DNA of 64,000 nt from the sequence record PP456877.1; one strand, given 5' to 3'. Positions 2,913 to 13,527 of the stretch are shown here, in pieces (position 1 is the stretch's first letter; each line of letters begins with the position of its first letter). The notes beneath the pieces were generated by a model. It was not told the DNA's origin. It did no database searches and worked only from the letters and a program-made list of their open reading frames with translations. A program made the translations under genes and the position numbers.

Positions 2913-4427
2913 ATGTTTGAGTTATTGTTGTCTTCTGGACTAACAAATACGCCTATATATTCCGATCCTTATCCAGGTCCTAAAACACTGATAGCTGGGA
3001 CAAGGGAATTAGGTTTGTATGGTGAAACAACATCTTCAGAATTATTTGGTTATGATGATGCAGCTAAATTAGTTAATATGACATTTGGAACAGTAATCAA
3101 TGATGGACAACCATGGTTAAAGTTCTCTAATAAAAATGTTACTTGTTACATACCAAAGAAACCAGCTCGTAAATCAATACAAAAATCACGGCTTAATAAT
3201 GCCGGACTCCGTAATGGTGACTATGAAGTTAGATTTATGGGGAACATTTATAAATTTGGTTTATTAACAATGGCTGGTGCCACATCAGAATGGCAAAGGT
3301 TACTTTATAATGTTCACGTATCTAATTTAAATGGTGCTAACTGGCCTTATAAATTTACAGATAATGACTTAGGTATTAACCAAGCGGTCGCTGGTGGTAT
3401 TAGCACTGATGGTACTACTAACTGGGGAAGAGACCCAGGTAGTGATCCAGTTAATGACCAGCTCTATCGTGGCTACTATGCGATTGATATAACTAGCTCG
3501 TCAAGTAGTGAAACGGGTGCTGCAACCCAAGGTTGGCGTCCAGTGGTTTATGCTAGTGGTACATATCCATTCGTTAAAGATAATGTTATTAAACTTACTG
3601 ATTTTGAAACTGATAACGAAATGGCAGCAGGTGCCCAAATAGGTAACTTAGTCTATTATTACGGTGGTAAGAATAATGCTAATACTGCTCTACGTACATT
3701 GAATTTAGCCACGGGTAAGTTAACAACATTACAACCAACTGGTACACCTATAGCAGTTAAACAATGCTCGGCTGTTGCATTTAATGGTAAAGTATATTTC
3801 TATGGTGGTGAAAATGCCACAGATGGTGTACTCACTAAAGGTATGCAGTGTTATGATCCTGCAACTAATACATGGGAAATAAAATCACCAGGTACGATAG
3901 CTTGTCGGTATGCACGTGGAACTAGTCTTAATGGGTTAATCTACATATTAGGTGCAGCTGATACAACTGCAACAAATAATCGTGGATTTACATTAATGTA
4001 CAATCCAACTACAGATACATATACCAGTGGTGCAGCATTTAATGATACTGGGGTATATACCCAAGATTATTCAGTGAGTGTTTATAATAATAGCGTATGT
4101 GTTATTGGTGGTATGGTTGGTGCCGGTGTTAATACTGGAATCATATCGTACAATCAAACCAACAATAATTGGTCTAAACCAATAACTACAGGTATACCTC
4201 TTGGTGCAGCTATTAATATACGCCCATCTGGTGAACTTTATGTAATCGCTGGTGAAAATCAAAATAATGCACCAATTAAGTATTATGAACCACGATTAGC
4301 ACGATGGATAAATTTAGGTAATTTAGAAACTGGTTTAGTGGATGCAGGTTTTGCCAATACGTTTAATAACGATGGTAAGATTTATGTTCTAAACGGTAAT
4401 CAGAATTTAAAATACCAAATTAGTTAA
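2913..4427 (+). CDS. Kelch-repeat beta-propeller protein with phage-type N-terminal domain
   Basis: Six Kelch-like blades: VYYYGG, VYFYGG, IYILGA, VCVIGG, LYVIAG, IYVLNG. Confidence 0.75.
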   Translation: MFELLLSSGLTNTPIYSDPYPGPKTLIAGTRELGLYGETTSSELFGYDDAAKLVNMTFGTVINDGQPWLKFSNKNVTCYIPKKPARKSIQKSRLNNAGLRNGDYEVRFMGNIYKFGLLTMAGATSEWQRLLYNVHVSNLNGANWPYKFTDNDLGINQAVAGGISTDGTTNWGRDPGSDPVNDQLYRGYYAIDITSSSSSETGAATQGWRPVVYASGTYPFVKDNVIKLTDFETDNEMAAGAQIGNLVYYYGGKNNANTALRTLNLATGKLTTLQPTGTPIAVKQCSAVAFNGKVYFYGGENATDGVLTKGMQCYDPATNTWEIKSPGTIACRYARGTSLNGLIYILGAADTTATNNRGFTLMYNPTTDTYTSGAAFNDTGVYTQDYSVSVYNNSVCVIGGMVGAGVNTGIISYNQTNNNWSKPITTGIPLGAAINIRPSGELYVIAGENQNNAPIKYYEPRLARWINLGNLETGLVDAGFANTFNNDGKIYVLNGNQNLKYQIS

Positions 4428-10626: not shown

Positions 10627-10764
10627 AGGGTTGGACAGATAGTTATTCTTTAATATAGTGTAAAATTACCAAATGTGTTAAATATATGTTGAACTAATCA
10701 TTTTTTTCATTTGTCAATTTATATTGGCAAATATTAAATTAAGCCTCTATCGGAGTATAACAAG

Positions 10765-11259
10765 ATGTCAAATAAAGCTAAAGAACCAACTCTAACTAAA
10801 GAACAGGAAAAGACTCTACGTCTATTTGAACGTGCAGTTGGAGCATCAGCTGCGGCAGCTGATCATATTCTTAACCGTGATGGTTGGGATGTTGTCAATG
10901 TACTAGCAGGTTCTGTAGGTAAGCGTATTCTACAAACTGAAGTATTCATTAATCCAGTTATCAATAAGATCAATGAAATCATTCCGACATTATCTGATCC
11001 TACTGGATTCCAAAAGAACCTACAAACAGTTATTGCTGACCTTAATCGACTAACTAAAATTATCAGTGTCCTATATGCACAACATCAAGGTAAGGCTGGT
11101 CCAGCAAATAATGAAGATGAACTAAAACTCATCAGTGAACTTGTTACTAAATACACTGGTATTGAAGGTGCTATTGAACGCGGTATTGATGGTGTAATCC
11201 TAGCGATGATCGGCACTCTTCGAGAAGCTGGTTGGGACGAAAAACTAATTCAACAATAA
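10765..11259 (+). CDS. Hypothetical helical protein (gp78 position)
   Basis: 164-aa ORF with GGAG RBS, first gene of a + strand operon. Confidence 0.75.
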   Translation: MSNKAKEPTLTKEQEKTLRLFERAVGASAAAADHILNRDGWDVVNVLAGSVGKRILQTEVFINPVINKINEIIPTLSDPTGFQKNLQTVIADLNRLTKIISVLYAQHQGKAGPANNEDELKLISELVTKYTGIEGAIERGIDGVILAMIGTLREAGWDEKLIQQ

Positions 11260-11270
11260 TGGAGTTTTAA

Positions 11271-12872
11271 ATGGCTACTGCTGACTTCGATAATGAGTAC
11301 GATGATACTCCAGAAGAGAATTTACTAGATCAAATTGATGAGATCAATGCGCAACACGATCCTGACTCTAGTATTGAAAATAATGACGAGGTGGAAACTC
11401 CACCTTTCGTTTCTGATCAAAAAGAAATTAAACTACGTATTCCACGTAATGCTAAAACTGGAAATATCCGGGATGCTTCTGAACCGGCTATTAAAGATAG
11501 TGCTAGCATTCTTACTTTGCTACGTGAGAACCCCCAGACTGTTTATAATTTCCTGGATCACAATAAAGAACTATTTAAAGCATTTGCTGATAATAAAATA
11601 GATGACACTAGTGACGGTGTAAAGTGGACAGCTGCTATTCTGGAAGGCTTAGCTCACTCTATTGTTGAAGATGCACCAATCGGTGCAACTGCCCGAGAAG
11701 GTTCTGAATGGTCTAGTGAAATTCCTTATGGTGAAAAGATCATTCGCCCAGGCCGACCTGTATTTAATACCAATGGTCGTAAAATGACCGATGATGAAAC
11801 TCTAGTTTTCCTAACACGTAAAGCTAACATCGGTACGCCATATGATACTTTCCTACCTCATTCAGGTATTTGGGTAAAACTACGTGCACCTACTGGTACT
11901 GAAGTAGCTGCCCTACAAGCACGTCTAGCACAATTAAAGATCCGACTAGGTGCTGAATCAAAAGGTATGCTGTTCTCAAACATGGCAGCTGTATTACTTA
12001 ACATGGTTAGTAGTTTAGCACTTGCATGTGTTATTCAATCCAACTATAAGTTCAACACTCCAACTGACCTAGAGCATGTTATCTCAGTAGCTGATGAACC
12101 ATTCTTACATCATGCACTAGCAGCGACTATGTATCCAGATGGATTTAATTATAGTTATCCATGTATTGCAGATGCCAATACATGTAACCATATTGAAACA
12201 GCGAAACTTAATATGTCAACGCTTGTTCAATATGATCTACTGGCATTCTCAGAAGAACAAAAGAAATATATTGCACGTAAGTTTAATGCATGTACTGAAT
12301 CTGATCTTAAGACTTATAAAGAAGGATTCCGTATTGAAACTCAAGTAACTGAAATGTTTGGTGACGTTGGTGTTGTTCTTGAGATGTGCACAATTGCTGA
12401 CCGCCGAGAGTCTGGTGATAGTTGGATTAACTCAATTATCGATATGACTCAAGGTAGTTTTAATGAACCAGTTGATGGACCGCAACGTTCTCAGTATATT
12501 GCACGTTTACAAAAGATCTCTATTGCCCGTCAGTTCTCACATTTTGTTAAAGAGATTAAAGTACGTGAAGATGATGATGGTGAAAGTTCTGAGGATAATA
12601 TCCGCACTGCAACTACTAACCGTGAAACTATTGAAAAGTTCTTAACTAATATTCTATCCACACCGGAATATAATGATCGCTTTATTAATGCGGTAAGTAA
12701 CTTCATTGATTCACAACTAATTGGTATGATTGCAATTACAAGTTGGAATTGCCCAGTATGTGAGTCACCTGCCGCTACTAAATTTAAAGAACGTTTCCCA
12801 CACCTAATCCCTATTGACATGCTGTCAACTTTTTTTACTTTGGCGGCCTCGAAGTCAAACCGGATGGTGTAG
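11271..12872 (+). CDS. Putative tail/baseplate-hub assembly chaperone with Cys motifs (gp77 position)
   Basis: Acidic N-terminus, YPC...CNH and CPVC motifs reminiscent of T4 gp26-like hub chaperones; ends over a T7 run. Confidence 0.55.
   Translation: MATADFDNEYDDTPEENLLDQIDEINAQHDPDSSIENNDEVETPPFVSDQKEIKLRIPRNAKTGNIRDASEPAIKDSASILTLLRENPQTVYNFLDHNKELFKAFADNKIDDTSDGVKWTAAILEGLAHSIVEDAPIGATAREGSEWSSEIPYGEKIIRPGRPVFNTNGRKMTDDETLVFLTRKANIGTPYDTFLPHSGIWVKLRAPTGTEVAALQARLAQLKIRLGAESKGMLFSNMAAVLLNMVSSLALACVIQSNYKFNTPTDLEHVISVADEPFLHHALAATMYPDGFNYSYPCIADANTCNHIETAKLNMSTLVQYDLLAFSEEQKKYIARKFNACTESDLKTYKEGFRIETQVTEMFGDVGVVLEMCTIADRRESGDSWINSIIDMTQGSFNEPVDGPQRSQYIARLQKISIARQFSHFVKEIKVREDDDGESSEDNIRTATTNRETIEKFLTNILSTPEYNDRFINAVSNFIDSQLIGMIAITSWNCPVCESPAATKFKERFPHLIPIDMLSTFFTLAASKSNRMV
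12830..12836 (+). promoter_or_regulatory. Putative -1 ribosomal frameshift site T_TTT_TTT
   Basis: X_XXY_YYZ heptamer in the reading frame of 11271..12872. The -1 frame is open from 12818 to 13333. Confidence 0.6.
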
Positions 12873-13333
12873 TTAATGATCTGAGATATAGTCGTCTTGA
12901 GGCCACTTTCAAGGAAGATAGTGGCCACATCCTACATCCAAACTTTGGTTATGATAAGTTAACTGAAGATGATACACACTTAGATAGACTATTATCGACA
13001 GTAGGGGCAGTAAGACCGTCTACAGCAGCACGTTTAACAAGAGAAGCATATCTACTTGATTATGATATCGGTTCACCAGAAAACGGACCCATGTGGTTAA
13101 ATAAGGTGAATCCTAAAGAGGATTTTATCGAAGGTGGGTTGAGAAGGAGACTGACTAGAGATTTCTTCAAGTATAAAGTAGGTAGCTTATCTAATATGTC
13201 ATTAACTGAATTCTTTGAATTAGCTTATTCTGAGGTAGAATACATAATTGAATTATGTAGAAATATTACCCATAATGAAGCTGTTAATAACAATAATCAG
13301 TTAAATGAATTAAACAAGCCGTTAACTAAATAA
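12836..13333 (+). CDS. Frameshift extension (T-like domain); ORF track shows only 13091..13333
   Basis: Frame open for 85 codons before the first ATG: YFGGLEVKPDGVVNDLRYSRLEATFKEDSGHILHPNFGYDKL...; ends with SLTEFFELAYSEVEYII. Confidence 0.6.
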   Translation, partial: YFGGLEVKPDGVVNDLRYSRLEATFKEDSGHILHPNFGYDKLTEDDTHLDRLLSTVGAVRPSTAARLTREAYLLDYDIGSPENGPMWLNKVNPKEDFIEGGLRRRLTRDFFKYKVGSLSNMSLTEFFELAYSEVEYIIELCRNITHNEAVNNNNQLNELNKPLTK

Positions 13334-13344
13334 AAAAAAATAAA

Positions 13345-13380
13345 GACAGCCCCCTCTCCATGTGGAGAGGGGTTTATGTC
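13345..13380. terminator. Bidirectional hairpin
   Basis: CCCCTCTCCA-TG-TGGAGAGGGG between convergent genes. Confidence 0.7.
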
Positions 13381-13383
13381 GCC

Positions 13384-13527
13384 TTACTTACGTGCAAAGC
13401 TAGCTACAAGACCTTTGATAGCTAGAGCGACCATCCAGGCAGTTAACCCTTTCATTGGGCGGATATCAATCCGTTCTTCGATATCCAGATTGCCCTCACT
13501 ATTGATTACCTCAATTCGTACTTGCAT
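13384..13527 (-). CDS. 47-aa small protein with C-terminal hydrophobic helix
   Basis: GGAG RBS then MQVRIEVINSEGNLDIEERIDIRPMKGLTAWMVALAIKGLVASFARK*; below the ORF-track cutoff. Confidence 0.7.
   Translation of the reverse strand: MQVRIEVINSEGNLDIEERIDIRPMKGLTAWMVALAIKGLVASFARK

Follow-up and report, generated by a model that had tools for sequence, protein, structure and literature searches.

The window analysed here is a stretch of 64,000 nucleotides of sequence record PP456877.1. An open reading frame (ORF) at positions 11271–12872 on the plus strand of this window encodes a 533-residue protein that corresponds to PHIKZ077 (gp77) of phage phiKZ, a member of the Chimalliviridae. The region 10700–13500 is Phikzvirus sequence, with 100% identity to Pseudomonas phage vB_Pae3705-KEN49 and 98–99.5% identity to 46 further Phikzvirus records. 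The protein gp77 is encoded by core gene cg18 of nucleus-forming phages and is given there as a hypothetical protein (PMC10299810, supplement). The initial annotation of the window had proposed a programmed -1 frameshift on a run of T's near the 3' end of this gene, which would join gp77 to a downstream ORF lacking a start codon. Comparative evidence speaks strongly in favour of this proposal.

The anatomy of the junction was found to be as originally described. The gp77 ORF closes with ACT TTT TTT ACT, followed by ten further codons and the stop codon TAG at 12870–12872. The run of seven T's (T7, 12830–12836, plus strand) lies over the codons of F521 and F522 (FF), 11 codons before the TAG. 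It reads T_TTT_TTT with respect to the 0 frame, that is, as a slippery heptamer X_XXY_YYZ in the 0-frame phase, and is the proposed site of the -1 shift. Past this site, the 0-frame tail (12837–12872, plus strand) comprises 11 codons and the TAG. The -1 frame opens at 12818 and continues to its stop codon at 13331–13333, with a TGA at 12815–12817 just before the opening, and the first ATG, GTG or TTG in this frame is the ATG at 13091. After the shift site, the -1 frame extension covers 165 codons and a stop (12836–13333, plus strand; phrog_12109), and the fusion would amount to 522 + 165 = 687 residues, in agreement with the earlier calculation. All of this can be read directly from the DNA. 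The 121-nt junction was matched over exactly 121 bases, with no insertion or deletion (indel), in all 47 Phikzvirus records, so that T7 is not a homopolymer sequencing error.

An inverted repeat, TTGACA-TGC-TGTCAA, had also been pointed out upstream of the T-run. It is indeed present at 12814–12828 (plus strand), but it is not conserved: in 201phi2-1, PhiPA3, PA1C, Psa21, Phabio and Noxifer its arms are different and non-complementary. It merely encodes the conserved residues that precede FF and, judging from these genomes, is probably irrelevant to the slip. The -1-frame TGA is found exactly 13 nt before FF in the window and in nine other lineages. This stop codon is a by-product of conserved (I/L)-D codons (NNT GAY), and its position in these ten lineages confines any frame change to the ~50–70 nt that hold the T-run.

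To define how widely this layout is conserved, we compared the locus in phiKZ-like relatives, in 35 IMG/VR loci retrieved by a search with the gp77 family alignment, and in the phages Goslar, SPN3US, RAY and AgentSmith. The non-redundant relatives numbered 36 (34 loci together with Goslar and SPN3US), with a gp77 protein identity of 19–100%, and comprised Pseudomonas, Erwinia, Salmonella and Escherichia phages as well as metagenomes. The C-terminal FF of the gp77 homologues is encoded by TTT TTY in the loci that retain FF. In all analysable loci, the 0-frame stop is located 30–69 nt past FF, the -1 frame stays open from 5' of the T-run until 138–171 codons past this stop, and the +1 frame is closed. 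The T-run and an open -1 overlap in orthologues, which had been suggested as a check of the proposal, were thus observed in every lineage examined. When the downstream piece alone was used in tblastn, matches with 32–41% identity were obtained in PhiPA3, the PA1C group, Psa21, D6, Phabio, Noxifer, 201phi2-1, Viktualia and RVTF4. These matches begin at query residue 1–10 (48 in RVTF4), right after the T-run and well 5' of the starts chosen by annotators. With a hidden Markov model (HMM) trained on 28 of the -1 ORFs, all 44 were recovered, and those of Goslar, RAY, SPN3US and AgentSmith scored E-values of 7e-10 to 2e-18, which indicates that the downstream ORFs form one homologous family.

The opposite arrangement, a gp77 extended without any change of frame, was sought in an exhaustive HMMER search that comprised 1,700 gp77 family clusters at the 50% identity level. 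The best 150 of these 1,700 clusters all stop soon after FF, with 7–26 residues (median 13) following it in the 146 that have a terminal FF, and no in-frame C-terminal extension was found among the 150. The record of Pseudomonas phage RVTF4 (L011, PQ015378) retains the T-run and the beginning of the -1 ORF, but the downstream ORF is split over two frames by one extra frame change, which reflects a misassembly or a genuine break. Bacillus phage vB_BspM_AgentSmith (L047, MW749006), a 200-kb phage with a recorded Bacillus host, carries a Chimalliviridae-type block consisting of UvsX, a virion protein, a gp78-like protein, a gp77-like protein and the -1 extension, with T_TTT_TTA as its slip site.

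Codon usage at FF indicates that the run itself is under selection. The first Phe codon is TTT in 36/36 relatives, while elsewhere in the same genes TTT makes up 7–82% of Phe codons and the G+C content of the loci ranges from 25 to 57%. With the loci treated as independent, the product of the TTT shares is 10^-17, a value that overstates their independence because they are phylogenetically related. The heptamer T_TTT_TTY is present in 22/34 non-redundant loci. In three relatives FF was lost and the T-run kept, namely AgentSmith (GTT TTT TTA) and loci L052 (GTT TTT TTG) and L051 (GTT TTT ATC). The second Phe is replaced in all three, and the run of five or seven T's survives because the preceding Val codon is GTT; each of them carries a homologous -1 ORF.

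The decisive control is provided by the gp26 genes of T4-type phages, which encode an FF at the homologous position. Among 35 distinct genes, FF is encoded by TTC TTT (30 genes), TTC TTC (four genes) or TTT TTT (one gene), and the longest T-run at FF is three in 30 of the genes and two in four. Conservation of FF at the protein level therefore does not produce a T-run, which argues that the run in Chimalliviridae is itself selected. Elsewhere in most of the T4-type genes (L054–L095), TTT is as common as or commoner than TTC. The start of gene 25 in these phages overlaps the end of the gp26 gene and lies in the -1 frame. From these sequences, the TTC at the first Phe looks like an avoidance of a slippery run located a few codons ahead of the overlapping start of gene 25. 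The contrast at the homologous FF offers a clear natural case of selection for the slippery pair in Chimalliviridae (first Phe always TTT) and apparently against it in T4-type phages (TTC in 34/35).

The -1 ORF is conserved from the T-run onwards and not only from its first possible start codon. In the 34 loci, the first canonical start in the -1 frame is located a median of ~22 and up to 122 codons past the 0-frame stop, and 14/34 loci have no canonical start for at least 30 codons. In this start-less stretch, related loci differ by 0.25/0.17/0.51 at the three codon positions, with the remainder of the -1 ORF following the same pattern (0.33/0.20/0.56), and amino-acid identity is 34% in the stretch vs 26% in the rest of the ORF. 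The start-less stretch evolves as a coding sequence, according to these substitution patterns. The 0-frame tail is conserved as well, with the pattern FFxL..(R/K)(V/L/I), in which L is invariant and R/K is found in 33/36 relatives. In an AlphaFold2 model of gp77, the tail forms the end of the predicted C-terminal helix (residues 517–532). Both gp77 products thus appear to be under selection. If only the fusion were important, single-base indels would have fused the two frames many times, which is not seen in the best 150 clusters; if only gp77 were important, neither the T-run nor the -1 ORF would have survived. A model of the extension predicted from a single sequence was helical at low confidence (predicted local distance difference test score, pLDDT, of 39). 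Searches with single proteins and profiles against Pfam, NCBIfam, PHROGs and PDB sequences returned only the extension's own family and no function, and hhalign found no match between the extension and T4 gp51, gp25 or gp28.

The same searches of Pfam, NCBIfam, PHROGs and PDB sequences gave no function for gp77 either. The AlphaFold2 model of gp77, built with 19 family members and of good confidence (pLDDT 77, predicted template modelling score 0.80), had no match in a fold search of the PDB (best E-value 2.5). Against BFVD, Foldseek returned gp77 orthologues at E-values of 1e-30 to 1e-20. Eight further matches (E-values of 8e-5 to 4.4e-3) were seven proteins bearing the names baseplate hub assembly protein, subunit or chaperone and one called only "baseplate protein". 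The hub-assembly proteins are 250–285 residues long, and their matches have a probability of 1.0 and template modelling (TM) scores of 0.50–0.56 on the target. The orthologue in AgentSmith is annotated independently as "putative baseplate hub assembly protein" (one record), and the NCBI name for the gp26 family is baseplate hub assembly chaperone. T4 gp26 and gp51 both belong to PF12322 (T4_baseplate; 216 and 178 bits, respectively).

The order of sequence motifs is also common to gp77 and T4 gp26: a Cys pair, GD-h-x-h-K...P, CPxC and a C-terminal FFxL. In gp77, these motifs include the near-invariant first pair C298/C305 (12162–12185, plus strand), P373, the second conserved pair C494/C497 in CPxC (12750–12761, plus strand) and F521, F522 and L524. 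The collinear residues of the gp26 family are C82/C84, P119, C187/C190 and F204 and F205. A resemblance to T4 gp26/gp51 had been suggested at the outset; fold and motif order bear it out, while profile-profile comparison was not significant. Homology of gp77 to gp26/gp51 is accordingly argued from fold and motif order and not from sequence statistics, and on this basis gp77 can be regarded as a much enlarged distant relative of these hub chaperones. The gp135–137 entries of the 201phi2-1 record carry no mass-spectrometry note, unlike the neighbour gp138, and Goslar gp81/gp82 are without mention in the Goslar virion-structure preprint.

Conservation of the run, of its phase and of the -1 ORF strongly supports a programmed -1 ribosomal frameshift at the gp77 T-run. 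Ribosomes translating gp77 would reach TTT TTT at 12831–12836, preceded by a T, and a fraction of them would slip one base back on the U-run, tRNA-Phe re-pairing with UUU. With 11 codons still to go to the 0-frame stop, these ribosomes would switch to the -1 frame and read it for 165 codons to 13333. The minor product would be a 687-residue isoform, in which the end of the gp77 C-terminal helix is replaced by a conserved, predicted helical domain. Non-slipping ribosomes would produce the 533-residue gp77. Since gp77 appears to be a non-virion core protein and a distant relative of gp26/gp51, both isoforms most likely cooperate in the morphogenesis of the tail hub or baseplate, as the short and long forms of lambda G/GT do. 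The ribosomal nature of the shift, its efficiency and this morphogenetic role are what we infer from the comparisons. Taken as a whole, a ribosomal slip that yields two gp77 isoforms with a joint role in hub or baseplate morphogenesis is in our view quite probable.

Several observations weigh against this interpretation. A G or an A precedes TTT TTY in 12/34 loci, where the heptamer is non-canonical and perfect re-pairing would be available to the second tRNA-Phe only. A conserved stimulatory RNA structure was not found: the mean z-score of the minimum free energy over 80 nt past the site was -0.16 in the 34 loci, and RNAalifold gave -0.54 kcal/mol and no covariation for 12 phiKZ-like loci. 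Rfam contained no relevant family at the slip region. Hairpins of 8–10 bp located 8–10 nt past the T-run, a spacing typical of frameshift stimulators, were detected in metagenomic subgroups L031/L033 and L037/L039/L040 only, and their arms are identical within each subgroup, leaving no covariation to assess. 201phi2-1 and a few others have a start codon near the 0-frame stop, which would make independent initiation possible in those lineages. Our literature search returned no proteomic or ribosome-profiling data covering the trans-frame protein, and the text of the Grad-seq supplements does not list gp77 and the extension proteins. With regard to function, gp77 and seven distant orthologues had no PF12322 match at E-values up to 10. 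Comparison of the gp77 and gp26 families by hhalign gave a probability of 1.9% and aligned only GD-I-x-I-K...P, and single-sequence hhalign tests aligned only CPxC and the GD motif; probabilities over all these comparisons were 2–4%. The suggested functional assignment is therefore based on a moderate fold similarity (E-value ~1e-4, TM ~0.5) and on motif order.

The slip site has been kept through the history of the family without a conserved cis-acting RNA stimulator. This led us to consider that the efficiency of the shift might depend on a trans-acting influence, such as a phage protein bound to the host ribosome or the tRNA-Phe status of the infected cell, which would make the long isoform a timed product. 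We regard this idea as speculative and improbable. To our knowledge, trans-activated frameshifting is known in some eukaryotic viruses and in no phage. In a milder form, the two isoforms may stand in for the T4 paralogues gp26 and gp51.

The same long isoform could also be produced by transcriptional slippage, if the phage RNA polymerase added one U on the T-run in some of the transcripts. Such a process would fit with a conserved element that is a homopolymer and with the failure to find an RNA stimulator. Chimalliviridae moreover rely on unusual multisubunit RNA polymerases of their own for transcription. However, the run has only five T's in PA1C, Noxifer, L025, L044 and L051, whereas productive transcriptional slippage in bacterial and phage examples usually involves runs of ~8–9 or more. 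The run is also always phased on the Phe codons, as a tRNA re-pairing model needs. Because five T's suffice and the phasing on Phe codons is constant, slippage of the polymerase seems unlikely to account for the locus. An artefact could be suspected, be it a misread homopolymer or a gene that broke recently, since homopolymers are error-prone and RVTF4 has a further frame change downstream. Nevertheless, the length of the junction is identical in the 47 independent Phikzvirus records, the frame relation is equal in all distant lineages, and an in-frame version is missing from the best 150 of 1,700 cluster representatives. Sequencing error or gene decay is excluded by this distribution across lineages, and we give it practically no weight.

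It could further be argued that gp77 and the downstream ORF encode two separate proteins, the latter being translated from a non-canonical start or by re-initiation, and that the T-run was kept for protein-level or other reasons. A TTG overlaps the stop codon in 201phi2-1, where the downstream ORF is annotated as gp135, and a canonical start is located within 10 codons of the stop in 7/34 loci; FF is conserved at the protein level, including in T4 gp26. Yet in the 14/34 loci with the longest start-less stretches (at least 30 codons), this stretch is conserved and coding-like, and the open -1 frame reaches back as far as the T-run in every locus. FF does not force the use of TTT, given that T4-type genes use TTC in 34/35 cases, and the T-run is retained in relatives without FF. 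We consider two independently initiated proteins to be an improbable explanation.

Upstream of gp77, a gene at 10765–11259 (plus strand) encodes a 164-residue homologue of gp78 (phrog_14050) and forms one unit with gp77. The gp78-gp77 order is also found in 201phi2-1, PhiPA3, Goslar, RAY, SPN3US and AgentSmith. To the left of this pair, on the other strand, are the genes of gp79 and of the virion RNA-polymerase subunit gp80; to the right of gp77 and its extension are four small ORFs and then the gp75 helicase gene. The gene order around gp77 is the same in the other genera examined. Directly 3' of the -1 ORF stop, a terminator-like hairpin of 9 bp, seven of them G-C, is located at 13351–13372. 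It is perfect and G+C-rich, reads as a terminator on both strands, and separates the gp77-extension unit from the PHIKZ076.x genes, the two running towards each other. From the gp77 stop to the end of the -1 ORF, no terminator-like site was detected. A hairpin past the -1 ORF and none after gp77 would be consistent with a single mRNA.

Existing annotations of the extension vary from record to record. In phiKZ, an 80-residue protein, PHIKZ076.4, is annotated from the first ATG (13091–13333, plus strand). The conservation of the extension starts 84 codons 5' of this ATG, and PHIKZ076.4 is probably an annotation artefact that spans the last half of the extension. In the KEN49 record, three small "hypothetical proteins" are placed within the extension, namely CDS0335, CDS0336 and CDS0337, at 12835–12930 (minus strand), 13060–13170 (minus strand) and 13196–13333 (plus strand), so that two run opposite to gp77. 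All three are probably spurious gene calls, because the plus-strand coding signal is conserved there. In Erwinia phage RAY (L050), gp266 (3532–4080, in the -1 frame relative to gp267) is annotated from a -1-frame ATG located 79 nt 5' of the T-run, which results in an overlap of 136 nt with gp267. The starts picked by annotators for the homologous -1 ORF thus differ widely between genera.

A frameshift at gp77 was not reported in the full-text literature on phiKZ, Chimalliviridae and jumbo phages that we searched, in agreement with the initial annotation, which knew of no report in phiKZ-like phages. PHIKZ077 and PHIKZ076.4 are not named in any paper found there either. The frameshift is absent from the core-genome paper, a 2025 review, the Goslar structure preprint and the PCH45 Tn-seq preprint, and none of the genome records of relatives that we examined annotates it. 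The Chimalliviridae (phiKZ, PhiPA3, 201phi2-1, Goslar, RAY, SPN3US) are intensively studied and in use as therapeutic phages, and cg18 is one of their ~70 core genes, with no function assigned. If our interpretation is correct, a protein of ~690 residues has been overlooked in all genome records of the family. The records would instead hold arbitrary fragments of it, such as PHIKZ076.4, 201phi2-1 gp135, PhiPA3 gp073, Goslar gp082, SPN3US gp226 and RAY gp266, and some would also carry spurious opposite-strand ORFs. The production of short and long chaperone isoforms by -1 slippage would then extend to an unrelated, gp26/gp51-like family encoded far from the tail genes. Hub or baseplate assembly would also become a functional lead for the orphan core gene cg18.

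The gp77 locus can be compared with three known systems. A conserved -1 frameshift in the tail assembly genes of double-stranded DNA phages was reportedly described by Xu, Hendrix and Duda in 2004, and the P2 E/E' pair of tail assembly chaperones (TAC) is said to have been characterized by Christie et al. in 2002. The P2 E/E' pair slips on a U-run. As in lambda G/GT and P2 E/E', slippage into the -1 frame shortly before the first ORF ends would add a C-terminal domain and so give a non-virion assembly factor in two lengths, and the layout is conserved far beyond sequence similarity. In contrast to these proteins, gp77 has 533 residues instead of ~100–150, has no TAC Pfam match or significant TAC fold, and is not accompanied by a stimulatory element that we could find. 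In the structure comparison that had been suggested, folds named as tail assembly chaperones appeared only at E-values of 0.6–1.1. Unlike lambda G/GT, gp77 is not encoded between the tube and tape-measure genes, but beside the virion RNA polymerase, gp79 and helicase genes. Of the earlier description as a tail chaperone pair, the two-isoform logic is retained, while membership in the lambda G/GT or P2 E/E' family is not; for lambda G/GT it is rejected by size, fold and genomic place. The likeness to G/GT is one of shared logic and not of descent.

The T7 gene 10A/10B capsid frameshift, in which a -1 slip adds a C-terminal extension to a minority of the molecules, resembles the gp77 locus in that the slip occurs on U-rich Phe codons close to the 3' end of the gene. 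It differs in that the T7 protein is structural, its extension is short, and the frameshift is not a family-wide core feature. The likeness to T4 gp26/gp51 lies in the fold matches and in the order of the motifs. T4 has two paralogues of one family, gp26 and gp51, whereas in Chimalliviridae both isoforms would come from a single gene. At 2.5 times the length of T4 gp26, gp77 has no Pfam match, and T4-type gp26 genes, unlike gp77, have no T-run at FF and a closed -1 frame there. On the basis of fold and motif order, gp77 may be better described as a gp26/gp51-like hub-assembly factor with an acquired, frameshift-dependent C-terminal domain.

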